DNA of 64,000 nt from Chlorokybus atmophyticus (Eukaryota > Plantae > Mesostigma and Chlorokybus algae), in NCBI GenBank assembly GCA_009103225.1, contig RHPI01000277.1, forward strand, positions 269,297-333,296. Reading direction: 5' to 3'. Each line of letters starts with the position of its first letter. The stretch's first letter is position 1. The translations under genes were made by a program, and so were the position numbers. Shown piece by piece: positions 4,784 through 55,260 of this stretch. The notes under the pieces are model-generated. The model ran no database searches. It saw nothing but the letters and a program-made list of their open reading frames with translations, and was not told the origin of the DNA.

Positions 4784-4879
4784 CGCGAGTGTGCACGGAC
4801 CAAAGGCGGACTCTGCTCTTGTGCTACCAGCGCAGCGTCCGCCTCTCCCGCATTATCCCTCATGCTCACATGAGCATGA

Positions 4880-5342
4880 GAGACATCGTAAAGACGCTAG
4901 TGGTGTTGATATACTGAGCGTGTGCTGCTATGAGGTCAAGCGCTGCGCGTCGAAATTGCAGGCCATCTAGTGGCCATATAGGGTAGAACATTGTTGGACA
5001 CGCTGTGCCATGTGTGCGTGTGTCCGTCTGTGAGTGCGCTGAGCTTGATATTAAATGCGATGTGCAAGCAAGTGACAATAATACCTAACCAAACCCGTGT
5101 AACTGTACAAGTAGTAGTGATGCAGTATTAAGATATTCTGTCATCCAATGATACTACCAAGGTATGGGTGCATGTTATGATGGCGTAAGCGTGAGGGACA
5201 TCGTGGAGACGCTAGTGTTGCTGTGCTGAGCGTGCGCTGGTGGTGTTGCTGTGCTGAGCGTGCGCTATGAGGTCCAGGATGTGCATCAAGAGTGCAAGCC
5301 ACCCAGTGGTTACGGGTGCCGGGTAAAACATTGTTGAAAACT
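4880..5342 (+). repeat. Diverged ~300-bp tandem duplication whose second copy is split by the 14.5-kb transposon and resumes at 19890-20052
   Basis: Copy 1 reads ...cattgttggacacgctgtgccatg...aacccgtgtaa...tcatccaatgatactaccaaggtat (4990-5165). Copy 2 reads ...cattgttgaaaact at 5342, then gtgccatg...aacccgtgtaa...tcatccatatatactaccaaggtat at 19890-20051. Confidence 0.85.
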
Positions 5343-5896
5343 ACGTCACAAATTTTACACGGTGACTGACAAAGGACTAAGGGACTGACTGGTGCCTGAG
5401 CCTGCCTGCCGCTGCCTGAAATGTTACTATTGGACTGTTGGGTTTGCCGTTGGCTTGAGTGGACTAACGCAGACGGCCGCGGGCCGAAAGTGGTTGTCAG
5501 TAGCACTAACCGACCGAGAGTTGTCAACCAATTACCCTTTAGTCGATGTGCACAGACGGCCGTTAGCCGGTAGTTACAGACAACTGACAGCAATAGCCGG
5601 AAGTTTCTTTGCCGTTACACTGCTGTGAATATGTGACCTTTGCCGTTTGACAAAAGTTGGCAATTCTTGCCATAAGCCAACACTAACATGCCATGCAGCT
5701 TGTGCAAACCTTGGACTGATTGTTTGGTCTTGCACCTATAAGCCCACAATATATACACTGTACCGGCAGTGGTGAGAGTATGTCCACTTGCAGCTGAGCA
5801 ATCGACTTGCGCATGAAACTACCCTGTAACATTGAGTCTAGCTGTCGCACTCATGCGCAGCTTGTCAGCCCATGGTGCCTGCCTCAGAACTTCTCC

Positions 5897-6742
5897 TCAA
5901 ACCCCCTCCTCCTGTTCCTCCTCCGACAAGTCTTCAGCTTCAACATCGGAGTCATCTTCATCTACTGCCTCGCTCGCTGACAGTACAGCGGCTACTTCGT
6001 CCTTCAGCTTGAATGTAAGCGCCTCGCCGTGCACGCGCATGCGCTTGATGGTCGCTTTGAGAGTGACCACCTGCATTTGGTAATGCTGTAGGAGTGGCGT
6101 GCTGCCAGAGAACTAGCCCATCAGCATACACATGCTTACCTCGTCTTCCACTCTGTTGCACTCCGCCAGGCAGACAGTCAGCCTGCCGCTCTGCTCTCGG
6201 TTCACTCTGACCAACATGGCAATCTGCAAGCATACTGCTTAATTACCGCTGAAAACCATTAAATAGGTCATGAATACCCGTTCGTGGTACTCCGCAGCTT
6301 CTCCTTTACGACTTGTCAGCTCCCGCAAGCAGAAACAGGCTGTGCATTTGCGAGATTGGTCATGCTGTTCATGTGCATGACACTGGAGGTTGTGCATGAG
6401 GGTGTGCATGTGGTATTGACAGTGTATATCATGTGCAAGATACTTGAGGCTGTGCATGTGCAAGATAAAAGCACCTTAGCATGTGGCATTGACAGTGCAT
6501 CGTAACCCACCTTGGTTATGCAAGTCTTGTTTGGTCCCTTAAATCATGTCGCCGTGGTCGCAGCTGCTGGTGGGTCGGATGTTCTTAGAGGCAGTATTGT
6601 GGTGTGCCTTTGCCCACTCGGAGGGGGAGCCCTGTAAGATATCGCCCGAGTCACTGTTGTCATTGGCTGTGCCCTTGGTAGGCATGGTGGGGTTTGACAC
6701 CAAGGACACCCCTCCGGCACCCTGCCCGCCCTGTGCGAACAT
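5897..6742 (-). CDS. Spliced transposon cargo gene of unknown function with an acidic C-terminal tail; 5' part uncertain
   Basis: Exons joined by GT-AG borders read ...CFCLRELTSRKGEAAEYHER | IAMLVRVNREQSGRLTVCLAECNRVEDE | VVTLKATIKRMRVHGEALTFKLKDEVAAVLSASEAVDEDDSDVEAEDLSEEEQEEGV*. Confidence 0.45.
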
Positions 6743-6929
6743 GGAATTCACCCCGGACCTCGACCACAATGCCCACTACGCCCCTGGCAGCGCCGTCAAC
6801 GATCCACCAAACGCTACATACCCTCGGTATCACGCCCCTGTAAGGGCAAAGCTTGGCGGAGCTATCAATGGTGTTTTTATGCGCAGGCACAGCACTTGTC
6901 AATAGTACGAACTGCCATTGCCACTGTAC

Positions 6930-7059
6930 AAAGGTACCATTTCAATGGTACCTTTTGGCAAAGGCATCTTCGTACCATTGAAACGGTTCAATCAGGATAT
7001 ATATGCAGAGACTCACCCTGGACGTGCAATAGCTCGATTGTACCATAATAATGGTACAA
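6930..7059. promoter_or_regulatory. Cluster of palindromic GTACCAT-N4-ATGGTAC sites in the divergent spacer upstream of the transposase
   Basis: Exact copies lie at 6934-6951 and 7040-7057, with a degenerate copy at 6972-6989. Function is inferred. Confidence 0.5.
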
Positions 7060-7160
7060 CAGAGCCAGTGAATGGCGGCCAAGTTTCCCGCCTTTGGCAT
7101 GCAAGGGTAGCGGTGGCGGTGGCGGTGGCGGCGGCGGCGGCGAGTGTGCGTGTTGCTGGG

Positions 7161-7214
7161 TATGATGCTGGTTACATTGGCGACACCTGTGTCGCCAATG
7201 TAACCAGCATCATA
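7161..7214. other. Perfect 26-bp inverted repeat with a 2-nt loop
   Basis: tatgatgctggttacattggcgacac-ct-gtgtcgccaatgtaaccagcatcata, ending 21 nt before the transposase ATG. Confidence 0.9.
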
Positions 7215-7235
7215 TCCAAACATTAGTAGTGAGAT

Positions 7236-10200
7236 ATGGAAGTCCTTTGTCCGTATTGCCACATGCGCTTCGCCACACGCAGCTCGGTCTACATGCACAT
7301 TGTTAACAGCAGGGTGTGCAAGCAAATCAAGCTATATATCGGCCAGCGTCCATTACAGTACGATGCGGGTCATGTTGAACCGGGGAGTTCGATCCAGGAT
7401 GCGCACATGCTTGATGCTGAAGGATTCCTCTAGGAGACACACACAGAGCAGCAACATGAGGAGGAGGAAGTGAACAAGGGCTTTCAATGTGTGCGTGTGC
7501 CTGAGAAACCTGTGGCACGCCAACATGGAAGTGGAAGCGTCCCTTCGCACGCGTCGGAATCCAGGTGGTATAGCTTGGAGAATGCTCTTGCAGTGGCATT
7601 CGTGCAACAGCGGCTAAGGCATGTCGGCCTCCGACATGGGGCGGATCATCAAGTGCATCCAAAATGCACACTTCCTGACGGAAAGCTCCAGTGGGAGACC
7701 GGTGTGCATGTGGCCAGCTACCTCCGGACCACAATTGCTTTCTCTCAGTCTGAGGTGTGTTCACGGTGTGCGGTGCATGTGCTTCAACCATCAGAGCCAT
7801 GTCACATATGCACATGCGAGTGTGCTGGCGTATTGGGACTGCGTGACGGCTAACCTGCGCAAGCCTGGAGACCCTGAGGATCAGGACATCAGCGTCACAT
7901 ATATGCCGGCCAAGGTCTGTGAAATGCAGTACCTAATGCAGTATCAATGCAGTATCTATTTTGAGGCCAGCATGCCTGTTAATGCTCTTGGTCGGAGCAG
8001 GTATGGCTCACGTGGTTGTATGGCAATCCACATGCCGCTAATGGCTTCAATCTCCAGTACAGTGGTGACGAGCACAGCTTTGGCCATCCTTCCACGGGCG
8101 ATTGGTGGAAGGATGTGGAGGTGGATTTGAGGAGAGAGGTGGGGGAAGCGTGCTACTTGGCGCCTGCCATTCTGTACAGTGACAAGACCACGCTGGACAG
8201 CGCGGGCAAGCGCTCTGGCTACCCTCTGATGGCATTGCTTGCCAACTACAGTTGGGACATGTATGCTAGCAACATGGGGGTTGTTTTGATAGCGCTTCTG
8301 CCGGTGGTTCACGCAGTAGCCGGGCATCCCACCTGGGCGCAGGGCAAGAAATTGTTCTCCATTCAGAAACGTGAGATTTTTCATGACGCTTTCAAATGTA
8401 GTGTTAGGGGATGTGAAGTGGGCTAGTTGGGAAGGTCTACAACTTATCGACCCGAATGGCATCAAGCATCATGTGTTTCCCGCGCTTGCCAACTACATCA
8501 GCGACTTGCAGGTAGTGGGCATGCATGGTTGCAACCGGATGCAGCCTGCCAGCAATCAGTGCATGGAGGATGTTGTCAGCAGAGCATCAAAGTTTGTCAT
8601 GTTGTAGGAGACTGTCGCACTCGCATGCACTGTGTCGGGCAACCAAACACGACATCCTTACGATGTTTGTCTCGTCACAAAATCAGATTTGTTAGAGATG
8701 GATGAAGACCGGGAATTGAGAACCGAGGCCTTCTACACACCAGCAATACGTCAGCGCTGCGGGCGGACCTGCATAGCGGTGTTATAAATGCACACCAGAC
8801 AGCCAAGGCTTTCAAGCAAAACTCCATGTATGTTGAGGAGGTAATGGTCAAGTTACCGGCATTCGTGAGGATGAATGGCTTTCTGTAAAACCAGGCAATG
8901 TGGTTTGGCAACAGAATGCACTGTGGGGTTGGCGACAGTCGCGGGTGCCGGGAGCTGACTGCTACTCTCGTCTTGCCCCTGACGTAATGCATGTGCTGGG
9001 AGGCATCATTGACCACCTGCGTGCTGCTGTGTACGACGCTGCGAAGAAACAAATGTATCCATCCACGAGACAGACTGCAGGCCAGGCACGTGTATGGTGT
9101 TGCTTTTGTGTTGAACACAAAAGCCAACAACACGTGCTTACAAGCAGATGTGCACAGGCTGAATGCATGCAAGGCGACTCTACGGGTTTCGCACTTCAAG
9201 GCACCCACAAGCACAGTAGATTTCTTCCTGTCCGACCACTCCTTTCAGGTGGTGGAGAAAGTGGCGGTGCTGCAGCTGCTGCCGGTCCTTACAGACGGTT
9301 TGCTGCTCGACAACGAGGGCAACGATTTCTTCACCACTGCTGCCGCATCCTTTGCCCAGTGGAACAAGAAGTTGCTCAAGGTACATGATCACATTAGAGA
9401 GACCCTGACCTCAGCCGACAACGAGCTGGCTGCCTTTAAAGCTGCAGTGTTGCATCCGCTACAGTCGTCATATTCTGCACAAATGTCAGGTTGGAAGATT
9501 GACAAGATGCATCAGCTCACTCATTTTGGGCCGGCAATTGTCAGCAATGGACACACAGATTGGTTCAGCGCCAACCGCATGCCAAATTATCAAACGGCGG
9601 GCGCGTAGTGGCAACAACCGGAACTACCGGGCGCGTATCCAAAAGGCATGGAGCTGTGCGGAATATATGAGAGAGGATGGCATGGTCGTGGATCCCGAGA
9701 TGCGCTCGGTCATAGCGCAGGCGCGGCAGCAGTGCTGTAATGTAATGGAGAAGACGGACAAGTTGCTACGGATGGTTGTGCTGACAAGGAGGGAGTCCAG
9801 CCCGTACTGGAGCGGATCTGCGCGTAGCCGCCAAGTCGCCCTGAAGACTCCATTCACCAACAAGCTGCCTGCCACCCTGGACAGCTGGTTGAGGAGGGAA
9901 CAACTGGAGTTGGCCAACGGGTGGCGTGCTTTTCGCGTGGTGAACGGAGGCGCAGCGGTATACATGACATCAGGAGTCAGCATGCCGCGCGCAACTGGGA
10001 TGTTCCATGGGCGGCCTTGGTTCTCTACACTTGAGTTGGAAGGTGATGAGGACGGTGTGAACATAACGTGGTGGGCTCAGGCACTCCTTTTTCTGCGCGT
10101 GGTGGTGTGGGGTGGTAGCGGCGAGCGCGTATGGAAGGAGGTCGTGTTTGTCCGCTGGTACACGAAGCTGGATGTGACGAGCGACACAAAGTGCATCGCT

Positions 10201-10356
10201 CTGGAATGGGAAAAGCGACGAGGGGGTCCACATCTCGATGTCGTGACTCTGTAGCAAGTAAAAAGCATTGTCCAGCTGCTCCCCATGTTTGACATGGACA
10301 GCGCCCGTGTACAAGAGGGCAAGTATTGGGTGAACGTTCACTGCACTTCCACGTGA
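7236..10356 (+). pseudogene. Plavaka-family transposase, disrupted by stops and frameshifts, probably intron-containing
   Basis: N-terminal C2H2-like finger (CPYCHMRFATRSSVYMH). Family motifs: PAILYSDKTTLDSAGKRSGYPLMALLAN, REIFHD, DPNGIKHHVFPALANYISD, LAPDVMHVLGGI, KIDKMHQLTHFGPAIVSNGHTDWFS, RATGMFHGRPWFSTL, VFVRWY and VQLLP...YWVN. These match Plavaka motifs as I remember them. Confidence 0.85.
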
Positions 10357-10559
10357 CACATGTACTTGTCTCACTACTCTAAGTTTGGAGCATATTAGTC
10401 AGTTAGGCATTGCTAATCGTATGCTAAGACTTTTGCATGTGGATGTGTACGATACCGGGCAGCTGTCACTGCACAACTGTCACCACAATCGAATGTGCCA
10501 TGCAACAATCAACAATCAGTACACCGTGTGGCATTAAGCATCAATACAGCGCACCACAC

Positions 10560-11295
10560 TCAAGCCTTATAGTTCCATGACACAGGAGGGTAGTCACAGC
10601 GCATATCCATTGTCTTAAGCATAAGACGCCCTATGCACTCCGCCATTGCGGGAGGAACTGCATTCGCTATGGTATTGGCCGAGGTCATCCATGGCACTCC
10701 CAGCGCTGTTTGCCACGCAGCAATGCCGCCCCTGGTGCTTGGAAGGCCATAGACCGGGTACATTTGCTGTGGCGCGTTTGATGTCACGATTGTCTTTGCG
10801 CTAGCGGACAGGTGCGGCGATAGCAGTCCAATTGCCTTGCTCGCGTGCGAGCAGCGTGCTGGTGGGGTAGCTGCCACTGGCTGTGTCTTAAACAGACGGT
10901 GTTGGAAAGTTGATAGGCCAAACGTCGTGCCACAATGGGACAGATTGGGTCTGAATGAGGAGGCTGCTCCTGGCACATTCTCAATCACAAATTTGACTTG
11001 GCTTGCAAGCAGCAGATGTCGGACAAGCGGTATTATATTCTGGTGTCTCTAGGATGTGCAATGTGCCGCCCGTTAAGGTGCCGGGATAGCACCTGAATAG
11101 GCTTGGCATGGTGGACTGGCCCAGATGAGCTCGTACTCGCTCAGCTCTCCTGCACACACTCAGGGTGCATACATTACGGTGTTTGAAGGGCAGCGGGTAC
11201 TCAGAGGAGGGACTTATGTCCATCCCGACCACGTCAAAGCCTGCGTGGTATCAACTGACACTGCCACCGCCGTAGATTAGGTCGAGTGCCCTTGG
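10560..11295 (-). pseudogene. C5 cytosine DNA methyltransferase of phage/actinobacterial type; 3 stops and 1 frameshift
   Basis: Motif I reads RALDLIYGGGSVS*YHAGFDVVGMDISP..YPLPF. After a frameshift near 11150 come motif IV YELIWASPPCQAYS (Cys codon 11106-11108) and motif VI FVIENVPGA (10974-10982). The ORF continues with HCGTTFGL..QHRLF and ends with ALGVPWMT..IANAVPPAMAECIGRLML. Confidence 0.9.
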
Positions 11296-11810
11296 TCTGC
11301 GTGTGCGTCCAAGCTTGTTGTCAAATGGCGTGTATGTGGTCAAGGCTGGCCGTGGTGCTGGCCAGGGACTAACAATGATGCCGTCCGGGCTTACTTTGCG
11401 ACTGACGTTCTCCCCTCCGGCGCGCAGAACATGGCGTGCCCCGTCAACTGATGTGTACGCGAATACGTTGTGCCCTTTGAAGTTGATGGTTTGTGGTCGA
11501 TCACCGTCATCGAATACTATACGGTGCTGCCCTGCAAAGACATTTTCCATTGCACCATGCATATACGATGCGTCCTCAATCTCGCACGCCACGAAGCGAT
11601 GCTGACCTGACGCTTGCTTGAATGATTCCACAACGCCCGCATACCATTCCCCGTCCAGCGGCCAATGCACCTTGACACTCACACCGATCAGCAGCTCGCA
11701 TCCCAACTTGACTGCGTTTCGCAGCCGATGCAGTGCGCTGTCCAACGGTCGATGGTCTGCCTCCTCTACAGCGGTCAGGGGTTGGAACTGCCCACGCCCA
11801 CACTGTGGAA
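11296..11810 (-). pseudogene. Tudor domain (PDS5/MSH6-like) fused in frame to the N-terminus of the methyltransferase
   Basis: LLIGVSVKVHWPLDGEWYAGVVESFKQAS | GQHRIVFDDGD, with a probable short intron (gtcagc...tttgcag). The reading frame runs without interruption into MTase motif I (ORF 11251..11745). Confidence 0.75.
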
Positions 11811-11889
11811 GACTGCTCTGAATGCGACAACAGCTTCAACATGCATGAAATAAGCATACGCCCAACGTAATATGCAGTGATACGTCGCG

Positions 11890-12290
11890 GTCCACTCTGC
11901 CGAATTACCTCCACAGCATCCACCACTTGTGCACTAACCACATGTCCCAGTGTTATCCATGTGAAGAAGCGCATGGGTTCCCCTCGCCACTTGAAGCATG
12001 AGCGCAAGCACGATTCGCACACGCACTGCACGCAATGGAACAACTCGGGTTCCTTGCACAGCACTTGGCCGAGGCGGCAGCCAAACACGTCGACATTGTG
12101 TGTGGTGTGATGCCAGCAAGCAGCACTAAAACCGTGGCACACTGTCTGCACTCGCTGGCATTCGGTCAAGTGTGCTCGCATTTGCTGCCTACGGCCATTG
12201 GCACATACGTACGCATGGCATTGTGGGCACACCAAGCATGGTCTTCTAGGTGAAGGGGATTCAACTGCTGCCGCCGATATCATGCAAAAT
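11890..12290 (-). pseudogene. Cys/His-rich, possibly PHD-like segment upstream of the Tudor-MTase
   Basis: PCLVCPQCHAYVC...TECQRVQTVCHGFSAACWHH...GC...LC...FHCVQCVCESC lies on the same strand. The ligand spacing is not canonical. Confidence 0.35.
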
Positions 12291-12875
12291 AGGAATCGGC
12301 ACGGCTGCCCACAAACCGAGCGAAATTTTAGGGTATGGGCATCAATTTGGGGTTGCCAGCTTACGAATCCTAAATGGGTCAAACTTTGAGTGAAGCACGA
12401 CCATACCATGGACGCTATTGCAAACCCATGCATGGTACTACATCAACATGAATGGTTCTCCATCTGTTAATTGTACTACAGTACAAGGATACTCGCATAC
12501 TACCACGATCGTAAAGTAATATTGTGCTGTCATTTTTTGGAACCCAGAGCGCTGTCCGAGTTTGTTGCTGTCAACCACGCTCTGAACCAGCGAGGTATGC
12601 AAGCCATGCACTGACTCATGCGCCGGGCAGTCATCATACACATGTATAGCCATTGCTTCTGACAACAGCAGATCTCGGGTGCACCCTGCACCATACTGCA
12701 ACTATACATGTACCTACATGGTTCACAGCAAGCTAACACAAAACTGCAATACATGCACAATTGTCATCAAGGCGGGGGCCAAATTACCGCCGACACGTTG
12801 GCGTCTTGCATCAGGCGTCGCGACTAAAACGGGTGAGGTTGCTTGCAGAAGGGACACGTTTGTAGATTCTTTGAT

Positions 12876-13736
12876 TTATTTGCCACGGTCTTCTAATTTG
12901 CTATGATGCAGACATGGCACATCGCTTTCTTCCAACAAGGCGTCTCCCCATCCGCTGGGGGGGGGGNCAATGCAACAAATCAGCACACATGGTGCACGCG
13001 GGTGTGCAAGCTGCCTTTGCCACCAAACTCTATTATCGCGTTGCAGGCGTAGCGACTCCCATTCAAATGGCGCAGCATAACGCTCCACTGCCTGCTCGAT
13101 CACCTGACGCCCATGTGCCGCCATACACCACCTGCTGGTCTTGGTGGTCTCGTCCAGCATGCGTTTATCCAGGCCGTTGACATGGCTGTCGTCACTCGTG
13201 TACTCCCCCGCATCGCCATATTCTTCGAGCTTCCACAAAATCAGCTCGACGTGCCATATGACATACAGCCACTGCCAGCCAAAGCATGCCAAGTACAGCT
13301 CAAATGGTTTTACTTGCCACCCAGTAGGTTTGCTCAGGTAGTGGCACACATCTCGACCCGCATCAGTCGACATCGACAGGTACATCGGCCACAGCAGGTC
13401 GAAGTTCTGCTCCACGGATAGCTCTTGCACATCGCCGGGTTGCTGCGGCAGCAACAACACCATCATATCGAGGACGGCGAGGGGAACAACGTACTACGGA
13501 TGGTCATATTGTGTATGGGTTCCAACCGGCCAATTCCCAGAGGTCTGTTTGTAACGCACTCTCCACATTTGCTCCCACTTATTGCATACTTTCGTCACCC
13601 ACCTCGAGGCATGCCGCATGCGGTGATGCAGCGCGTCTTGCGCGTATTGTAGGGCGATCAACTTCTTTGCACTGCGAGTCAGCCCTTCAAAGCGTCTGCG
13701 CGTCGGTGCTTTGAGCTTAGGCAGCTCGTGCCGCAC
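12876..13736 (-). pseudogene. Unidentified Trp/aromatic-rich cargo coding segment
   Basis: Two protein-like ORFs (13494..13736 and 12876..13466) lie close together on the same strand, with an N at 12967. No family recognised. Confidence 0.35.
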
Positions 13737-13891
13737 TGGCTGTCTCTCTGGATGATGTTAAGCAGCCACTTGACGCTATAAACCCGCCTGTGCTACCTAC
13801 TCAGGACACACAGTCAGCCCCAGTGAGGCTTCAAGGCGCTGTGCTTCTTCTGACGTTGTAACGATGCCTCACCTTTCCTTTTTTTGTCCTC

Positions 13892-14990
13892 TCAGCGTCC
13901 TTTGTTCCACAACCTTCTCCTTTTTTTTTTGTCAACCTGCACATCTTGGCAGGCGCTCTCCGTGGCATTGTCACTCAAAGGAGGTAAGGCGTCATCTTCT
14001 TGCTCCACAGCCTTGCGCTTGTTGGTTGCCTCCCGTTCCTCCACGACCTCATGTTGCTTCATGAGGTTGAGCATGAAGCCTTTGTCTTTCAGCGCAGCTT
14101 TCAGAACACCTCGATCAATCTCTTTACCAACAAGACAGGCTGGGATCAATGTGGCAAGCTTAGAGGGAGAGGGCGAGCTACAGCTGCTTCTTGATGGAGA
14201 TGCCTCCGGATGGTAAGAGTGCGGTGGCAAGTGAGTCTCCGCGGCAGGAAGGGAGGGTGCTGAGTTGTTATTGCGAACATGTGGCTGTGGTTAAGGGGAG
14301 GCAGGATGTGCAGAACACTTGGCTACTTTCTGCCTAGCACACAAAGGCGAGGCCTGAGGCGTTGGCGCAGCACTGGGTTACAACCGGTGGTAGCGGGGAA
14401 TTGGCAACGCCATTCCGCCACACTCCGATTAGGTCTGTTACCTCCGGTGGCACTTCATGCATAGGCCACGACCACTGTTCGGTGCTTGCAGGCTTGAGGA
14501 GCCAAAAATGTGCTTCTGGCTCATCAGGAGCAGTGTTGCCCACCACCAGGACTGAGTTGGGGGCTTCTTTATTTCCAACCCAAACTGCGCTGCCAGGCCG
14601 TGGCCCACTCCCCATGCTCGCGCTGAACGGTCACGCAGCCAGTCAACAAGCCCAGCTTGTTGGCAAATATGGTCATCTGCAAGTGCTCGACGTATACATC
14701 TTTTCTCCGCACAATCTGTCGCACCTTGGCCATGGCTATGTCAATGTTGCAATTGACATCAGCCAACATGGTCGCAGGTTGTTTGTCGTAATACTGCGCC
14801 ATCTCTCCCGCGGCACCAGTGGCTCTGCAGAAGTCTAGGATTTCGCTCTCCACGCCTGCATCGACAGCCTAGGCGGTGACTTTGCGGAGAGTGTCCCCCC
14901 TGCCGTCGTCGTCCATGGTGTCTAGCATGGCTCAAAATCTGCTCGAGCTGAGGCACTTGTGATCATCCAGGACACCTTGCGCTATGGATG
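13892..14990 (-). pseudogene. OTU-like cysteine protease candidate with a charged, NLS-like tail
   Basis: VLDDHKCLSS (D-x-x-C; Cys 14953-14955), a central helix YVEHLQMTIFANKLG, and EAHFWLLKP (His 14508-14510), followed by KRKAVEQEDD...DKKKRRR. It contains two stops and a frameshift. Confidence 0.4.
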
Positions 14991-15241
14991 GCCTGGCGCA
15001 AAATACACAATGGTAGAAGCAATTACCATCCGTTGGCGCGTTTAAGTGGTCCCATGAGGCGAGCTGGCCACATAGCATGACTAATGGCATATGCGGGTTG
15101 CGGCCAGCTCCTGTGATGACTCGCTAGCAGGTGGTGACCCATGCTGCATGCGCATACAGCACTCAAATGGTGTGTCCAACTGTGGACGGCGAGAGTCACA
15201 GTGACTGATAAAGTACCTGAGTTTGGGGTTGACTCCCAGCT

Positions 15242-16600
15242 TCAACTTGCAGCGGGTGGGGTAAAATAGGTGCAGAAGCCACATCGGTTGTTGCATTGTG
15301 CTGTGGTCTCGCCGGTGGCGGCAAGAAGAATTGTTGCCCCGCAATCACCGGTGCTGCTCGTGGAGGAGATGGCAGTGCATGAAGGACTGGTGCCGCGGAA
15401 GGTGGTTGCGAGGGGAGCAGGAGCAGCAGGTGAGACCACTTGTGCGTGCAGCAAGGGGGGCTGTATACAGAACCCAAGATAAAATGGTTCACAATGTTGC
15501 AAAGGGTGAATATAAGCTTATGCAGTGCCTGACGCATTGTTACCAAGGCACGAGCATAAAAGACAGCGACTTACCTCAATGGCCCGTGGGCTGCATGGAG
15601 CAGGGGAAGCCATGGGGGCTGACAAGGTGGTATTGGGTGCACTCTCCCCGTCACCCTCAATCGCAGACTCGTCACGGAGCTCGTCAGCCATGGGCACATC
15701 ATGTGCCACTGCCCCAATGAACATGTCGGGATTCAACAGGCCAACATGCATGTTAAACTGATGCCGCATTGCCGCCGCGCCCATCAGCAAGTGGGATTGA
15801 AGAACCAGTTGATGGGATTGAATCCAGGCTTGCATAGGAGCTCCAACAGGACCTAGTGCACTATGGTGCTGTTAAGCAATCACATGTGGGTTAGCTGCAT
15901 GCTTGCGACACTGCAGTTGCAATAGTTAGCTGCATCACACCGTCATCAGTTGGTTGCTTCGAACAGTCACCTGCGGCATTGCTGGTTGATGCACGAATGA
16001 TTGCATGGACTGCGTTATTGCTGGTTGATGCACTATTGGTTAAATGCCAAATGAATGGCCACGCGCTCATGTGCTCAAACTTAGCCTACTTCGTTCGGCA
16101 CGCGCGCGCGACTTCGCACGCTCACGCACATCGCAGCATGCAAAGGTAGGCATGCATTAGAGGTGCATGCAGTCAACATGCACAGCGAGATTGGCAACAA
16201 CATACCGCCGCCCAGCTCTGTCTATCTGCTCTGGCTTCCGCAATGTCGGCTTGACTGTAGGGTGGGTATGGGTGAATAGTGGAGGCCTGCAGCCACGCTA
16301 CATGTATCACATGGACTGCGCTTAAAAACAAATTGCTCTTGCAAGGAAATGCATGTGGCTGTTGAGCGTACCTCTGCATTCCTTTGTGTTTGTTCCCACA
16401 GCCGTAATTAGTCCCGCATGATTTTGACAAGGGGCTCCAAGGATTGCAGCTCCTGATCCACTCTTTGTTGCAGAAAGCGAGCCACCAAGCAGCTCTCTGT
16501 GTGAAGATGGTCCTTAATGGCTTGCCTGCTGGTTTGTCCAATGTTGGTGATGCATGTTGGACAGCCCCATTGCTGACGCCTGCCATGATCCATGACGTGG
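15242..16600 (-). pseudogene. Upstream minus-strand cargo coding fragments, unassigned
   Basis: ORFs 16173..16586, 15518..15835 and 15242..15502 are on the same strand as the OTU-like and MTase segments. No family recognised. Confidence 0.25.
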
Positions 16601-16844
16601 CGCCGGGTAGTAGCTGGCTTCGCTGCTTGAACTCTTACGACCACAACTTCTCGCAAGATGTGCCACACCGCCGCCGCCGCCGCCGCCTCCTCCGACTCTT
16701 GGTCCTCCGCCTCCTAGTCGAACCCAGGCCCACTATGCCTGACATTCGACCCCATCATCAACCTGGTGCCCCTGCGTGCCATCATTCGCCACCAATGAAG
16801 CGTTTGGGTGAGTGCACGCTAACTCCCATTTGGGCTGATCGAGC

Positions 16845-16884
16845 AATGGCTCTGTCGTACCATCCATGGTACGACAGAGCCATT
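16845..16884. promoter_or_regulatory. Perfect 19-bp inverted repeat containing a GTACCAT/ATGGTAC pair in the second divergent spacer
   Basis: aatggctctgtcgtaccat-cc-atggtacgacagagccatt, with related partial copies near 16923 and 16998. Confidence 0.7.
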
Positions 16885-17187
16885 ATACGGCAATGGCTAG
16901 GGTTGGACGAGAGATGCCTTTGTCGTACCATAAATGTTACGACACAACCATCGTTACAAATGGTTGTACGAAGCATGGATGGCACGAATACATAAGTCGT
17001 ACCATCAACCATATGAGCAAGGACGCACTACAAGTGCGACTCTAGTGCGGGACACAAGACGTTCAAAACCGCCTCATTTTCGTTTTCGCGCCTTGTACAT
17101 TCGGGCGGGCCAACCGGCGGCGGCAGCGTTGGAGGCGGCAGCGCCACTATCAGCTACACAAGCGGCACCCGACTATCAGTTAGAGAG

Positions 17188-19013
17188 ATGCCTTGTGGTC
17201 CATCCGTAGGTGCACCTCGTCGTAGAGGTCGGTGCCAGTTGTCCATATTGCCCCCAGTGTTTAACCCGGCAACCGTCGCCAACCAATCGCAGCAAGACCC
17301 CGCGCTAACGCCCAGCACATCACAACAACTCCACCTGACACCGCAGTCGCAAGGGCAAGCTAGACTGCATGCGTTCTTGATGCACTGTGCACATTGCTTC
17401 TTGCTCAACTTCCAACTTGGATGCTTGCTTCTTTCATGACTGGCACAGTGACGCACTGCATGCGTTCTGGATACACTGTGCACGTTGTTCTTCTTTCTGA
17501 ACTGTGAGGGTTGCATCTTTCATGGCTGGCAGCATGACTCATGTGGTTATGCTTGCAGAGGGTCGATTGGAACCCCCAACCCAAACGCATTTGGCCGTGA
17601 CGTGGCAACCTCGGCCGTCAGCAACCCTTCTCCAAGCAAGTGGAAGATTGGCAACGAGGTAAGCACTGTGCGACACTGTGACACTGTGTGTATGTGTGTA
17701 ACGGATTGTTCTTCTGTGGACAGCATTTGCGAGATGCCGTCGTTGAAATCATAAACGGCCACTGGGTAGAGAGCCACGTTTATCCCAAGGAGGACACTAT
17801 TCGTAACGTCATGTGTCAGGTGCTGTGAATGCTTCATGACCGCACTGCACCGTGACACTGACCAACCTGCCCGTGACAGGTAGTTGGCTTCGACCATGAC
17901 GACGAGGCCGATGCGGCCAAGTTCTATGAGGTGTACTAAACTCCCGAGGAGTGCCCCTTCCACTGGAGTGTCGCCTTGAAGAAAGCTACGCAGGTCCGGT
18001 CTGAGAACGTCACCAAGATCAAGCATGTCCTTGAGAAGGAGTACAAGTGGACACTGTTTAACAGCAACAAGCGCAAGTGAGTTGGGTCCCTCACCACCAT
18101 GTCTGCTATGCAACACTGCCTTCTTACTCAGCCTCCATACACACGTACGCATCTCGCCTATTGTAACCAATTCAATCAGGCACATTGACGCCCTATTGGA
18201 CTCCGAGATTCAAAAAGCCCATATACGCGACGCGCTCCAAAGTAAGCCACAGGCACTATTTTAGCCTGGTGCAGGCTCAACTTCAACTATTTATATCGTG
18301 CTTAATGCCTTGTTGGTATGACTGTCGCAGACAAGTCATGGCGGAGATTTGAGGTGATCTACAACGCAGACTCGGAGCGGAGGAGATATCCATGAATGGG
18401 GCAACCCCATAATCTGGCAAATAATCGTGCAATGCTGATTTTACGCCGTCACTACATTTGGTCGCCGGCAGCTGACAGTCAACCACCTCGCATACCTGTT
18501 GCTTACGGTGAGCACTCTAAACTCCATCATTAGCAATTCAGGAATGCTGTAGCCCCAAACTACAGGCTTGTAGACGCGTTGCAGTGAATAGTGGCTTTCT
18601 AGCCCACTAAAACATGGCTGTAAACTACGCAGGTGGAGCGCATCCTAAAGGGCAAGGATGGAGACCCTCTCCTAGCTGCCAGCATGAACACACATGAAGA
18701 GTACCTCAGCGAAATCAACACCATGATCATGTTAATGAAGCGGGAGATGAGGCAACGGTACGCAGCCCTCCAGCCATTCACCTAAGTGAAACGACGCACT
18801 GCATCTTGTGTCGAGTACCTGCAAGATCCCAATCGACGCCGGCCGCAAGAAATAGCACCTCGTGACCCGCTCGCTGAGGCAGAAGCGGCATTTTATTGGC
18901 TGGCACAACCGTTTGAGGAGGAAGAGCAAGCTCCGGTGTCTCCCACACAGGACCCAGCGCGTGGTGCTTTGTTCCATGATGACGAGCAAAGCGATGATGG
19001 AGAGGAGCTGTAG
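17188..19013 (+). pseudogene. Spliced cargo gene resembling DUF6532-type transposon accessory proteins, with premature stops
   Basis: GT-AG exon chain: ...SKWKIGNE | HLRDAVVEIINGHWVESHVYPKEDTIRNVMCQ | VVGFDHDDEADAAKFYEVY*TPEECPFHWSVALKKATQVRSENVTKIKHVLEKEY ... WGNPIIWQIIVQC*FYAVTTFGRRQLTVNHLAYLLLT | VERILKGKDG...acidic end. The family match is from memory and is weak. Confidence 0.5.
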
Positions 19014-19384
19014 CGCAGTTGGTAGTCCGTGTAGCTGGTAGTGTACATAGCTACAAGTCTCTTGTGACTAAGTGTTGTGCATCTTAAACCAGCTCAGTCA
19101 ATCGTCATTATGCTCATGAATGTCAATACTTGCATCCCTATGATACAACAGAACTGCAGGCGTTCCAGTCACACCATCGAACTACAAGCCTTGGCAAGTG
19201 ACTGACACTGTACACATTTCAGGTACCTGTACACAGCACATGCACATCACGATGCTGGCAGTCAGTGACAGTCGCGTGTAGTCATGCTATGCAAATACAT
19301 ATATAACGACAGTTGGGCATCAGTCACCTTCAGTTGCTTAAAGAATGCCTTAGTTTATCGATAATTACCTAGTTGGTGCTTGTG

Positions 19385-19740
19385 AATTAGGCTTAGTCGC
19401 CTGCGCTAGATTGGTGTGTAACCTGCAGGTGCCTGTCACATACGCTAATCACCTAAGTAAGACTGATGTGTAAATTGCAAATGCCTGCTAAGTAGGTGTA
19501 GTCACCTGTTAAGGCTTGATGTGTAACTTACAGATGCCCGTTGATTAGTTGTCATCACCTAGTAATGCCTGATGTGTAACTAACAGGTGCCTGTTGATTA
19601 TATAACGTCACCTGTTAAAGCCTGATAAGTAACTAATATGTGGTTAATTATATAGGCATAGTCATCTGCTAAGGCCTGATAGGTAACTGACAGGCGCCTG
19701 GTAATTAGGCATAGTCAACTGTTAAAGACTACATGGTAAC
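19385..19740. repeat. Subterminal tandem array, ~53-bp unit, about 7 diverged copies
   Basis: The tcacct-type anchor recurs at 19397, 19449, 19502, 19555, 19608, 19662 and 19715. Confidence 0.85.
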
Positions 19741-20175
19741 AAAAAGGGCCTGATAGTAACGGAAGTTACTATTAAGTCCCTGTATTGAGATTACAGGTGG
19801 ACTGAGCCACGACAGTCTAGATTAATATCCTCAGGTGCACGGCCGTTGCTAATATTTAATCGGCCGGCAGGGAAAACATATTGCGACGTGTGCCATGTAA
19901 GCGTGTCCAACCGTGCGTGCGCTGGATTTGACGTTTAAATTCGTTGTGCAAGTCAGTGACAACAGTGATATATGGTAAAACCCGTGTAAATAAAAAGTAG
20001 TAATGATGCATTATTTAAATATTGTGTCATCCATATATACTACCAAGGTATAGGCTGACAAAGGATTGCTCATGCAAGCATACACAACAGCACACACAAC
20101 ATCACTTATAAAGGTTGAGGCAGCCACATAATTATTCCGATTGTTTGGAACAAGCGGCAGAGGCAACTAGGCTAG

Positions 20176-25485: not shown

Positions 25486-27874
25486 GCAGAAGCTTCCTTC
25501 CCTGCACAGCAATCTGTGCCAGCCACCGATGCACAGCCGGCAGCGTGCCATACATATGCGATTTAACACTTACATCAAGGCTGCGCGACTTACATCATGT
25601 GAAGGTGACTGCAGCTGAGGAAGGATATCCTGCACGGATGCATGCACAGGCCAGTGCCTGCGTAATGAGATAGAGCGGCTGGCAAGCACGCAGTGCAGCA
25701 GCGAGTGTTAGAGCCAGTTGCATCAAGTTGGTTATCTGTGAGGCAGCATATACATAGAACAACGCGTTGAGTTGCACTGCCAAGTAGCAAGTTGTGTATG
25801 TGGTCGCACCTAATGATGACTGAAACGCTGTGGTGGGTAGTACAAGCATGATTGGGTCTTGCATCTTGTTCGGTTGTTGACCCTATCGGGAGTATGACAA
25901 ACGGTGAAGCTCTTTATATCAATTGTTGGCCTGAAGTGTTTGTTTTCACTGTCTCTAAGGGGTCCTCTTGCAGGCTTTCATATTAAAGGCTGTCACTGCA
26001 TTACGCGACAGGGTAACTTGTAAAAATCAACATAGGACATCCCTTAGGATTGATTATAATACCACAACCTTTGGTACTCTTAAACACTAAAGCTGCAGTC
26101 TGCTGCCTACTGACCTATACCGTTTGGGAAACGAGCGATTGCAGCCGAGAAAACGATCAAGAGCCATGCCTAAAGATTAGGAGATAGACCAACTTAGTAT
26201 CCGCTGGCAGACCACGTGGCTGCAGCAGGTAGGAAGGTGACCGTTAGATAACGAGAGATAGCTATCTATCGGTTAAGGAAATTTAAACTAAGTCGCTGCA
26301 TTGGACTGCATGCACTACCAATGCACTGCACTGGGCTGCTGCATGCATGCATGCATGCATGCAGCTGCGTCCGCTGCAGGCTCACATGGAAGCTTTGGCA
26401 TAAACCATACTCTTGTAAACAGCACCATACATGGTCCACCTGCAGTCGCCATACAAGGTTCTATTACAGGCCATGCATGCACCATATGTGGTGGCATATA
26501 TAATACAAGCCATATTCCCCACATGTTACACCGTATACGCTATGCATTTATGCCATATCAAGGCTGGTGCAAACAGTTAACCATGCATGGTTCTCCAAAT
26601 CTACTGCCACACATGGCGTATACACAATTTTGACCATGCATGGTGTCACATGTACATCACCATATGCGGTGTATGGGGCGCAGCCGTATATGGCGTGCGT
26701 GATAGCCATACCTCTCGTGCATTGCTGCCATGCATGGTCTCAATATGCGATATAGTGTGGCCATAACCATGTACGGCCAATCTGGTGTGCATATGCATAT
26801 ACGTGGCCTTAAAGCATGCCACACATGCCGAATGTCATTACTTGCCAGCACTCAGTGTCATCTCACCCGTACATTTACACAATGGCAGTCAATGTCAGCA
26901 ATCGGGTGGATGGAACACAAGTGGCGTTACTTGCCAAAAACAAGTGGCAGGCGTGTTGTTGCATGCGCATAATGGCAATCAATATGATGGTTATAACGGT
27001 ATTATTCTTAAGGTCATGATCTAATCAATGTGATATTGCTTCTCTCTCTCTCAATGTCATGTTCAAGTGGTATGCAATTTCAGTTGCGTTGGTCAGCAAC
27101 GCAACAAGTTGTCATTGCTATGCAGAGTTAATTGCATTGACACGGCAAGAAGGCAGCCACATACGCATGCTAATAACATACCACCCTTGCTTGGGTGGGA
27201 GATAACAATTGTTCTGAACTTGAAGTTGTTGGAATAGCTATTCTCATTCAATCATTATGGAATTGAATTGATTATGGTTGCATACTCAGAGGTTGAGAGC
27301 CTCAACTTTTTTTGTCTCCTACTGAACAAGATGTACTCATGCTAATGATACACCACTTATGCTTAGTGGGAGACAACAAGTGCTCTCAACTTGCAACTTT
27401 ACAGTTAATAAAACAAGGATTGATTCTCATTGCATACCCTTGAACTTGTCTCCTACTCAAGAAGATGTACTCATGCTGATGATACACCACATATGCTTGG
27501 TTGGGAGACAACAGGTGCTCTCAACTTGCCATTATACGGTTAATAATACAATAGTAAATTCTCATTGCGTACCTCAAACGTGTCTCCTACTTAACAAGCT
27601 GTGCACATGTAATCACACACCGCCTATGCTTGGGTGGGAGATAACAAGTGCTCTTAATTTGTTTAACTAGCTATTTTAGTTTAATAAATGATTGTCATTG
27701 CATACTCCTGAACTTGTCTCCTACTCAACAAGATGTACACATGCTAATGACACACTACCCATGCTTGGGTGGGCGACAACAGGTGCTCTTAATTTGCTAA
27801 TAATACAATAGTAGTGATTAAGTATCATTACGTACTCCTGAACTTGTCTTATACTCAACAAGATGTACACTTGT

Positions 27875-29950
27875 GCGTCGCAAATTGTTTCCCCTACCGG
27901 CCGATGAAATATTGGCAACGGCCGTGCACCTGAGGATACTCATTTGGACTGTCGTACCTCGGTCCACTTGTAATCTCGATACAGAGACCCGAGTGTAACG
28001 GCCGTCACCATCAGTCGGCGGTCGTTTTAATAAAGGGACTGACCTAGACTGACAGGTACCTATTAAATACCCCATCAGTCAAGCAAAGGGGACTTGACCT
28101 AACTAACCGGTACCCAACAGTTAGGTACCGGCAATTGTACCTCGAAGGTATCCAACTATTAGGTACCTTAGGGGTATCTTATGGTACCTTCAAGGTACCT
28201 GGCATTAGTGTCCCCATACCTATCGGTACCATTCAGTCACGAGCAGGTACTGCATGTGATTGTCGTCAACCGTGAGAGACGGCAAGTCACAAGCTTACTG
28301 ATTCACAAATATATAATATAATATAATAACAATAAACATTGTAACATGTTGCTACGCTATAATGTAAACTACATTGAGCTACTATTACTACTACTACTAC
28401 TACTCTTACAACATTAAGCTACTACTACTACTACTATATATACTCTACCCTTATACTCAGGCGCCGCTCCTCCACTCTCCACTCCTTCGCGCCTGCGCCG
28501 CCGCTCCTCCTCCTCCGCCTCGCCGCTCCTCCTTCGCTTGGCCTGGTCGGCAAGAAGGGCGTCAACACAACGGCATCATACACACACATACAAAGAAACT
28601 CACCTACCATGCCGCCGCCGCCGCCGCCTGGCCTGGCTTGGCTTAGCCTGGCCTGTAAGAAGGGCGGGTTGCGCTGTTGCACTTAACATAATGCCATCAT
28701 GCACATGCAACTCAACTACTCTGTGTACACACATATACACAAACCCACCAACCGTGCCGCCGCCGCCACCACCGCCGCCGCCACCGTCGCCGTCGCCGCC
28801 GCCGCCGTCGCACAGCTGTCTTTGTAAATGAAGCCGTTCAGCGTTTGAAACGCTGCTGCATTTCAAACACTCAACGTCTTCAAGTTCAATGGTACAGTCG
28901 TACCACTAAAATGGTACGACAGCACTGTTGTACTATTGATGAGTATTATCTACCCCCGTTACAAGAATCACGTTTATCTTTAAGATTTTCATTCCACTAA
29001 CGGGGTTATTCTCTTAGCGTTGATAAGAATATATATATTTTTACCGTTTAAAGAATATATATTCTATTAATGGGGGTATTGACTGATAACCTTAAGCCAC
29101 GTCATCATATGCTGACATGGCAAAAATAAAAACTTTATTTTTCATGTATATATTGTATAATATCATACATGGCTTCTATTGTTGAAGGTGATGTTTATTC
29201 TAATATCAGCAAAATATCTATGCTGTTAACAAGGTATTCCCCCATTACAAGACTGACCCCACTTAGTATTTCAAGCCTTCTCTTTAGTCTTATTACGTAC
29301 AAGACTATTCCATTAACCGAAGATATTTGCCTGTAAAACGATTGGTTCTTTGTAAAACGATGATCGTAACGGGGTTATTCCCTTTAAGGGAAGTCTTTTA
29401 ACGGGGATAGACTGTACCGTATAGGGTACATTGATGGGACTGTTGTACCATCGCAATGGTACTATTGTTCCATAAAGTGTGCCGAGTATAACTAACCGGA
29501 CTGACAGGTACTCGCCGCCATTGCTCGTCCCTCTTAGGAGACTTAGTTGAGACTGAGTGGTCACTTGCTTGCCAATGTAGGTTGGTCGCCGCCGCGGCTT
29601 CTGTACGGCCGCCGGCCGGCCGCGGGTCAACTCCGACTCACCGGTATCGACCGCCGCCATTAGGGGCCTGAATATACACTTAATTGCCATTACAGGTAGG
29701 TCGCCGTTGCGGACGCAGTATGACCGGTGGTTGGCCGTCAAAATATGTTGGTGTCACGTCATCACCGGTAGGCAACAGTCCACTGCACTGTACGATCGGC
29801 GGTCGGCAATTGATTATTGTCCACAATACGCACCGGCAGTTTATTCAGTCTCTTTGTGGCCCAAGTCGTTATGTCCGTTAGGGTCAGATAGGGTCAGGCA
29901 CCCAACAGTCCCTCAGTCTCTCGTAAGTCACCGTGTAAAATTTGCGACGT
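27875..29950. mobile_element. Non-autonomous 2076-bp relative of the Plavaka element, inverted relative to it
   Basis: The ends are GCGTCGCAAAT and ATTTGCGACGT. 27875-27984 matches the reverse complement of 19780-19889, and 29890-29950 matches the reverse complement of 5343-5405. Removing the element restores cacttgt|aatgacac, as in the intact satellite unit at 30066. No transposase ORF is present. Confidence 0.85.
28381..28436. repeat. Interrupted (TAC)n microsatellite
   Basis: Read directly from the sequence. Confidence 0.85.
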
Positions 29951-30936
29951 AATGACACACCACCTATGCTTGGGTGGGAGACAACAAGTGCTCAAGTGGA
30001 TGATTAGCAATTAAGTTGATTATCATGCCATACTCCCTAACTTGTTTCCTACTCAACAAGAGGTACACTTGTAATGACACATCACCTATGCGTGAATGGG
30101 AGACAACAAGTGCTCTTATAATGATGGATTAGCATTTTTATAGTTGATTAACATTCCATACTCCTCAACATGTCGCCTGCTCAACAAGATGTACACATGC
30201 TAATGACACACCACCCATGCTTGGGAGACAACAAGTGCTCTTAACTTGCTAATGATACAATAGCAATGGTTAAGTATAGTTGCATACTTCTCAACTTGTC
30301 TCCCACTTAACAAGATGTATACATGTAATGACATACCACACCCATGCTTGGGGGGGACACAATTAAAACGAGTGCTCTCAACTCCTGAATTAGTACATGT
30401 GTACCATCTTGTCGGCTCAGGAATTGATTGTCATGGCATACCCTTCAACTTTTCTCCCACTCAACAAGATGTACACATGTAATAACATACCACTCATGCT
30501 TGGGAAGGAGACAACAAGAGATCTCAACTTCTTGAACTGGCTATTCCACTTCAATAATTGAATAATTAATTGTCATTGCATACCCTTCAATTTGTCTCCC
30601 ACTCAAGAAGATGTGCATGCCAATTACATACTACCCATGCGTAGGTGGGAGACAACAAGTCACTTGCACGGTGCTCCCAACTTGCAAAGTAGGCTATTCC
30701 ATTTTTATAATTCAATAGTTGATTGTCGTGGCATACCCCTCAACTTGTCTCCCGCTCAACAAGATGTACACATGTAATGACTGGGTAGAGGTCTGGCGTG
30801 TGCTACAGCAAGCCTAGTAGTGATGTACTCTCACTCTCTTTCTCTCGGCAGAAGCAGAGTCACTTGTACGCTTTACTGACTTGTGTGTGCGGCTCTTTTC
30901 TCCTCTGTGCGTTTCTCTGCCAGTGCGTGCGCGTAT

Positions 30937-30984: not shown

Positions 30985-31150
30985 NNNNNNNNNNNNNNNN
31001 NNNNNNNNNNNNNNNNNNNNNNNNNNNNNNNNNNNNNNNNNNNNNNNNNNNNNNNNNNNNNNNNNNNNNNNNNNNNNNNNNNNNNNNNNNNNNNNNNNNN
31101 NNNNNNNNNNNNNNNNNNNNNNNNNNNNNNNNNNNNNNNNNNNNNNNNNN

Positions 31151-54928: not shown

Positions 54929-55260
54929 GCGGTTGCGTTGCGCGATGTAGCCTTGGTTGATAGTTTGGTGAAGGCTGTTGGAGAAGAGAAGCTGATGCAT
55001 GGGGGCGTGGCGGCTAGCGTTGAGGCCATTACCACTGCAATAAGGGGTGAGTATGGCAAAACAGCCTCAACGTTTCAAATTCACAAGTTGTGGGGCGGTT
55101 GCGTTGCGCAATGTAGCCTCGATTGATAGACTGCTGACGGCTGTCAGAGAAGAGAAGCTAATGCATGGGGGCGTGGCGGCCAGCGTTGAAGCCATTGCCA
55201 CCGCAATAGGGGGTGAGTATGGCAAAACAGCCACAACGTTTCAAATCCACTAGTTGTGGA
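54929..55260 (+). repeat. Two-copy 166-bp tandem duplication of an exon-like segment
   Basis: gcggttgcgttgcgc starts at 54929 and 55095. Each copy carries an open frame ending in GG|gtgagt. Confidence 0.8.

Follow-up and report, generated by a model that had tools for sequence, protein, structure and literature searches.

In a 64-kb window of the genome of the alga Chlorokybus atmophyticus (contig RHPI01000277.1, positions 269,297 to 333,296; eukaryotic DNA with about 50% GC), a first-pass annotation had placed a Plavaka transposon at 5343–19889 that carries several chromatin-related genes. We found that the element occupies 5344–19888 (14,545 bp, GC 52.7%), with ends set by a short relative in the same window and by an empty paralogous host junction. 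The matching termini that had been claimed are real, although the bounds were off by one base at each end. Inside them lie the frameshifted remnant of a Plavaka transposase gene on the plus strand (7233–10254) and, on the minus strand, the remnant of a gene for a zinc-finger-like motif, a Tudor domain and a C5 DNA methyltransferase (10560–12433). This methylase gene is 5.2 kb from the left end of the element and 7.5 kb from the right end.

The short relative at 27876–29949 (2,074 bp, minus strand), which is non-autonomous, is inverted with respect to the large element and has only the two termini in common with it. In alignments of the two, similarity starts exactly at CGTC[A/G]CAAAT (5344) and stops exactly at ...TTGCGACG (19888). 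The left terminus (5344–5422, plus strand), whose inverted repeat begins CGTCACAAAT, is 78–84% identical to the reverse complement of 29871–29949, with the similarity extending over 61–81 bp. The right terminus (19750–19888, plus strand) ends in ...TTGCGACG and, over 139 bp, shares 82% identity with the reverse complement of 27876–28014. A repeat search recovered the same inverted pairs, joining 5342–5422 with 29871–29951 (78%) and 19750–19888 with 27876–28014 (82%). The support that the first-pass annotation had drawn from a relative at 27875–29950 is thereby upheld. Apart from the ends, sensitive blastn detected only a GGC simple repeat in common between the two elements. In the short relative the terminal inverted repeat is perfect over 11 bp, and in the large element, the ends of which read CGTCGC..GCGACG, it matches at 8 of 9 positions. 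Searches with the terminus patterns gave no match in viral contigs; the right-end pattern was also absent from metagenome contigs, in which the left-end pattern had three chance matches of 19–20 nt without similarity beyond them.

Additional sites are arranged just inside these ends. The right terminus contains a pair of CGGCCG sites 21 bp apart (19840 and 19861) that is kept in the short relative at 27898 and 27919, and CGGCCG also occurs just inside the left terminus (5474 and 5557) and in the short relative at 27999 and 29606–29622. CGGCCG is found 20 times, compared with 8 expected, and half of these sites are near the four termini of the two elements. At the right end only, a subterminal array of four to five 53-bp tandem repeats occupies 19446–19741 (plus strand).

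The insertion site provides independent evidence for the boundaries. The element is inserted exactly where two units of a host tandem repeat meet (units of approximately 340 bp, at 4873–5343 and 19889–20054). The right flank, from 19889, aligns with 5006–5168, and the left flank matches 4981–5003 over its last 23 bp. With 5344–19888 taken out, the two flanks together match the preceding unit junction (5005|5006) colinearly and without gaps; this junction is a paralogous empty site (4981–5020, plus strand). What the first-pass annotation had called an interrupted host duplication is a host tandem repeat instead, and the boundaries that it had derived from this feature are still supported by the gapless flank alignment. 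Compared with this host paralogue, the large element has no extra base. The short relative is inserted in a satellite of approximately 134-bp units (27160–27875 and 29950–30800, followed by an assembly gap, a run of N, at 30985–31150). A neighbouring satellite monomer, which has a rare ACTTG variant, reads ACTTG-TA-ATGAC and the filled monomer reads ACTTG-TG-[element]-TA-ATGAC; the filled site is longer by two bases, as expected of a 2-bp duplication of which one copy has since changed. Assigning the TA to the element itself was ruled out, as it left both reference sites shorter. In a separate observation, the CpG observed/expected ratio was 1.08 in the short relative, which is not depleted, compared with 0.73 in the large element and approximately 0.7 in the rest of the window.

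The transposase gene begins with a zinc-finger-like motif (7248–7319) and contains a Plavaka domain at 8067–8535. A match to the Pfam profile PF18759 (Plavaka) spans 8016–8426 (47 bits compared with a cut-off of 26.3, E = 2.7e-12, profile positions 82–189), which bears out the transposase named in the first-pass annotation, and profile positions 190–235 continue weakly in a shifted frame at 8371–8607; the reading frame of this copy is interrupted within the domain. The N-terminal piece weakly matched zf-C2H2 (E = 0.013). For the plus-strand frame at 9499–10254, a homology search over a restricted range of relative lengths found no relative.

The methylase gene remnant, read in its own direction on the minus strand, encodes a finger-like motif (12229–12158), a Tudor domain (approximately 11706–11470) and a methyltransferase (approximately 11300–10560). 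The open frame at 11745–11254 (minus) consists of a Tudor-like core and then C5 methyltransferase motif I (LDLIYGGG). Because the Tudor core and motif I occupy this one frame, the two domains belong to a single fused gene, which is arranged tail to tail with the transposase gene. The C5 methyltransferase and the Tudor domain that had been annotated as cargo both lie inside the ends, but as one gene rather than two cargo items. The first half of the Tudor domain matched PDB entry 7DE9 (E = 1.8e-5), the only match among solved structures. This entry is the Tudor domain of Arabidopsis PDS5C/RDM15 bound to H3K4me1, and it has in common with the algal sequence the core WP.D..(W/Y)Y.G.VES, in which the aligned Trp and Tyr are kept. 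Whereas PDS5C/RDM15 is a cohesin cofactor, the Tudor domain here precedes a methyltransferase inside a transposon, and its binding to H3K4me1 is putative. A predicted 75-nt GT..AG intron (11606–11532, minus) splits the Tudor domain, and its removal restores the second half (...GQHR-IVFDDGD...). This is the one intron supported by homology for the spliced coding segments that the first-pass annotation had described.

The methyltransferase is of a compact phage/giant-virus type, and its motifs are in the usual unpermuted order, with motif I (LDLIYGGG), the YHAGFDVVGMDI piece, PPCQ, ENV and the C-terminal ANAVPP, and all of these pieces are colinear with relatives, including relatives that bear PF00145. 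We found that the piece from ENV to the end matched 177 phage records by tblastn, mostly of mycobacteriophages (E values down to 5e-13), and the 15 matches listed all fell under features with an annotation as DNA methyltransferase. Among 1.84 billion representatives, this piece had 428 relatives at E ≤ 0.001, none with more than 49% identity; PF00145 was found in 6 of the 10 of these that were scanned. In Pfam searches of pieces of the broken gene itself, the PCQ piece matched PF00145 below threshold (E = 0.14) and the ENV-to-end piece had no match, as was also the case in a PDB sequence search with the latter. A model of the ENV-to-end piece built with 23 relatives (predicted local distance difference test score (pLDDT) of 65) gave nothing significant with Foldseek. 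Exhaustive VIA-align comparison of the model with 48,161 chains gave 20 matches with Z ≥ 2, all of which were C5 methyltransferases, with the alignments falling in their C-terminal halves; M.HaeIII was best (Z = 4.3), followed by M.HhaI, DNMT1, DNMT3, DNMT5 and DRM2. These Z-scores are low and the matches are exclusive.

The Tudor part was absent from the 167 methylase relatives examined. The contigs of three relatives were inspected, one unclassified, one giant-virus-like and one from a phage, and Plavaka was absent from all three neighbourhoods. The best relative (P0001, at 2028–3050 of contig L001) has 340 amino acids and 41% identity, and in it an inserted methyl-CpG-binding domain (PF01429, E = 2.3e-6) separates the ENV part from the C-terminal motif. 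The contig of this relative is 6.8 kb long and the other genes on it are unrecognisable. The contig of the second-best relative (P0002) bears giant-virus-like genes, namely one of the gyrase B/topoisomerase type, one for the small subunit of ribonucleotide reductase and a U-box gene. This neighbourhood could favour an origin of the locus as an endogenised giant-virus fragment that holds a Plavaka transposase, as could the giant repeats flanked by Plavaka that are known from Amoebidium (PMC11244446). However, viral hallmark domains were not seen in the approximately 50 pieces scanned, the locus is a defined 14.5-kb unit with inverted repeats and a non-autonomous derivative, and the gene has an intron and a plant-type Tudor domain. 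We consider a viral fragment extremely improbable.

To compare this copy with its family, we used contigs assembled from one public run that holds the stretch, over 7300–13200 (5,901 letters). The run may be the source sample itself, and its depth is a rough measure; it is DNA-like, with contigs that pass through the intron and show no joints. Family contigs covered the compared region throughout, including the 300-bp spacer between transposase and methylase, at a summed depth of 118–439, whereas two diverged contigs had a depth of approximately 4. This depth, similarly high in transposase, spacer and methylase, suggests tens of copies in which the transposase and the methylase are equally repeated. 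This result bears on the proposal that the Tudor-methylase is a host gene family that came to lie between two solo termini by chance, for which the spliceosomal intron and the plant-type Tudor domain might speak. Against this proposal, the methylase contigs are as deep as those of the transposase, the methylase has decayed together with the rest of the element and the flanks rejoin colinearly once 5344–19888 is removed, and we regard such a coincidence as highly unlikely.

Two kinds of recurrent motif link the parts of the element further. Translated in six frames, the window contains exactly three matches to the pattern CPxC-x12-16-H-x3-7-C, compared with 0.13 in shuffled sequences. All three occurrences are inside the element (7248–7319, plus; 12229–12158, minus; and 16563–16489, minus), near the 5' parts of the transposase gene, the methylase gene and a third minus-strand gene. 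No similarity among the three regions was found past the finger-like motif. We also observed that GTACCAT half-sites are enriched (24 compared with 8 expected) and clustered at 6934–7057, at 16857–17005 and in the short relative. Five GTACCAT palindromes occur in the window, compared with 0.2 expected, all of them in the 6934–7057 spacer or in the short relative. The cluster at 6934–7057 consists of GTACCAT-N4-ATGGTAC palindromes upstream of the transposase, and that at 16857–17005 of four half-sites, including one GTACCAT-N2-ATGGTAC. Together, the finger pattern and the GTACCAT sites fit one co-evolved unit. The two divergent gene pairs of the first-pass annotation are sustained in part: there are two GTACCAT clusters, the first with the transposase on its right and the second with a minus-strand zinc-finger exon on its left, but the outer partner genes have no homology support. 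A bacterial promoter scan of the spacer was set aside as irrelevant for a eukaryotic host.

These motifs also bear on whether the element is a composite, in which one transposon supplied the outer termini and another element later inserted itself between them, bringing either the methylase/OTU block or the Plavaka gene, after which the chimera spread. Such a history would agree with ends that are unlike published Plavaka motifs (PMC12730594) and with a right-hand third that has no recognisable genes. The finger-like pattern and the GTACCAT palindromes on both sides count against it, as do the family contigs that continue over the spacer between transposase and methylase. The first-pass annotation had named a methylase in a separate nested insertion with its own ends and target duplication as one case that would overturn its reading. 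We looked for inverted or direct repeats flanking the methylase, and around its block for inverted repeats or duplications inside the element, and found none. Moreover, even a composite would count as a cargo transposon if it spread as a single unit. We judge the composite history improbable.

The best explanation, which we hold with considerable confidence, is that 5344–19888 belongs to a multi-copy family of Plavaka (CMC/EnSpm-related) cut-and-paste DNA transposons, of which it is one full-length but inactivated member, and that it carries a Tudor-C5 methyltransferase gene inside its ends. Several points weigh against this interpretation. One full copy and one short relative were read, and the linkage of methylase and transposase in other copies rests on contig depth. 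Pfam calls the methylase, Tudor and OTU pieces below threshold or not at all. The target-site duplication is 0 or 2 bp, and fungal Plavaka families have duplications of 2–3 bp (PMC12730594). The termini CGTCGC..GCGACG are unlike those published for fungal Plavaka; the published end motifs (TGT..ACA, CATCA..TGATG and the CA..TG of the wider clade), which are those of fungal families only, are not matched by the element. Finally, a function of the methylase for the element is purely something that we infer.

Consistent with inactivation, this copy has decayed extensively. In the 5.9 kb compared, the family contigs read another letter at 181 places, of which 98 have A/T in the window and G/C in the family, 28 have the opposite and 55 are transversions. 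Half of the 26 A/T-for-G/C places that were listed are in CpG context. Both inside and outside the element, the CpG observed/expected ratio is approximately 0.7 and that of TG/CA approximately 1.5. The mostly C-to-T decay and the genome-wide CpG deficit are both consistent with deamination of methylated cytosines. Because the family contigs differ from this copy by indels, with 1 nt fewer at 8394, 14 nt more at 9581 and other small differences, the transposase of this copy is frameshifted relative to the family. The methylase has premature stops at 11253, 11075 and 11051, a frameshift near 11155, where half of the family contigs are without 4 nt, and substitutions at nearly invariant columns. 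On this evidence the copy is dead, a set of pseudogenes that makes none of these proteins, and it therefore cannot set any epigenetic state itself. The suggestion in the first-pass annotation that the element may set its own epigenetic state thus fails for this copy.

Giant Plavaka elements with cargo are already known, and what is new here is the Tudor-C5 methyltransferase cargo rather than a new kind of element; we found no description of this cargo in those of the papers searched that mention Plavaka. The novelty claimed in the first-pass annotation was too strong, as a red-algal Plavaka with a DNA methylase and a giant-virus Mariner with a C5 methylase had been described. The red-algal giant Plavaka of Bostrychia and Chondrus are 17–19 kb long and carry the genes PAG1–3, of which PAG2 combines a PF01555 DNA methylase (N4/N6-type) with SET, and PAG3 is a ParB-like/2OG oxygenase gene with nearby repeats (bioRxiv 10.1101/2025.02.11.637652). 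They are similar to the Chlorokybus element in having a Plavaka transposase, large size, several DNA or chromatin accessory genes, internal tandem or inverted repeats and many, mostly degenerate copies. By contrast, the cargo here combines a Tudor domain and a C5 methyltransferase in one fused gene, in an element of 14.5 kb, and the PAG domains (PF01555 with SET, or a PAG3-like oxygenase) were not found in any scanned piece of it. A report of Plavaka from streptophyte algae (PMC13519894) does not mention cargo of this kind.

Other known systems resemble the element in part. Fungal Plavaka (PlavakaB) carry TET/JBP and have termini CATCA..TGATG or TGT..ACA (PMC12730594). They too combine a Plavaka transposase with cytosine-modification cargo, and their 2–3 bp duplications are compatible with the satellite site here; however, their cargo removes 5-methylcytosine (5mC), whereas the cargo here would write it. 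Retrotransposons of Symbiodinium and Klebsormidium carry DNMT (PMC5890265) and are likewise algal mobile elements that encode their own C5 cytosine methyltransferase, but they are long interspersed nuclear elements (LINE) or DIRS elements with Dnmt3-type enzymes, unlike the present DNA transposon with its compact phage/virus-type enzyme and Tudor domain. Mariner-1_OLpv of Organic Lake phycodnavirus (PMC3627910) is, like the Chlorokybus element, a DNA transposon with a C5 DNA methylase. It differs in belonging to Tc1/mariner, residing in a virus genome, having a restriction-endonuclease-like partner gene and lacking a reader domain.

One possible life cycle of intact copies can be outlined. The transposase would recognise the short inverted repeats together with the subterminal sites that contain CpG (CGGCCG pairs and 53-bp repeats), and would mobilise both the complete 14.5-kb element and short derivatives that retain nothing but the ends. 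The Tudor domain, perhaps together with the N-terminal zinc-finger-like motif, a type also present in the transposase, could bring the methylase to chromatin, where it would write 5mC, possibly on the element itself. Methylation of the CpG-containing subterminal sites could then gate transposase binding. A tentative idea, which we consider rather unlikely to hold as stated, is that intact members encode a histone-mark-guided C5 methyltransferase, directed by the Tudor domain and perhaps also by a zinc finger, that places 5mC on the element itself or on selected chromatin, possibly at the CGGCCG pairs of both termini, and in this way gates transposase binding or couples movement to replication. 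If it were true, it would describe a DNA transposon with its own epigenetic writer in its life cycle. Mobile elements with enzymes that act on their own silencing marks are rare test cases of the arms race between genomes and transposons. In the known cases, fungal Plavaka and related elements carry TET/JBP, red-algal Plavaka carry an N4/N6 methylase-SET gene and algal retrotransposons carry Dnmt3. A virus-type 5mC writer fused to a reader domain in a cut-and-paste element would be a fourth solution, and the virus-type methylase points to gene flow from viruses to a eukaryotic transposon. This window supplies clean ends, an empty-site reference and a non-autonomous derivative.

The remaining cargo candidates of the first-pass annotation fared less well. 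Pfam searches of approximately 50 open-frame pieces on both strands found only Plavaka, a weak C2H2 finger and the sub-threshold PF00145. Of the profiles that the annotation had proposed for checking, PF18759 scored above its threshold, and those for OTU and DUF6532 were not found. The OTU-like candidate (13895–15123, minus), recognisable at the level of motifs only, consists of three frame pieces with a basic tail. Both motifs of an OTU deubiquitinase are present, the Cys loop as TDGNCFYH (with its Cys at 15021) and the His motif as HFWLL (at 14510), but the pieces of the candidate, in which the domain is split over three frames, had no match to PF02338 in Pfam. Among 20 weak PDB matches to the Cys-loop piece, most were viral or other OTU domains (E values of 0.1–1.5). 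The exon-like piece at 16411–16713 (minus), which holds the third finger-like motif (16563–16489), may be the 5' part of the OTU-like gene.

The DUF6532-like gene had no support from Pfam, the protein atlas, homology search or folding; PF20149 matched no piece on either strand of the region from 12.4 to 19.1 kb. Between the methylase and the OTU-like candidate lies an orphan open frame of approximately 293 codons (12879–13757, minus) with one in-frame stop (13496–13494) and one N. It had no Pfam match, and a homology search with 12969–13493 (minus), over a restricted range of relative lengths, found none. The right-hand region (17017–19010) contains open frames without support, the plus-strand pieces ending in an acidic tail at 19010. 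Within it, a frame of 220 codons (17550–18209, minus) had no Pfam support, and a homology search over a restricted range of relative lengths found no relative; its recognition by the protein atlas was low and its single-sequence fold had a pLDDT of 36. A regular-expression scan for RING/PHD fingers found none.

Elsewhere in the window, we observed two tandem units of 166 bp that are 89% identical (54924–55255). In addition, two direct repeats of approximately 430 bp (57752–58185 and 61358–61783), 97–98% identical and 3.6 kb apart, look like the long terminal repeat (LTR) pair of a small or non-autonomous LTR element.

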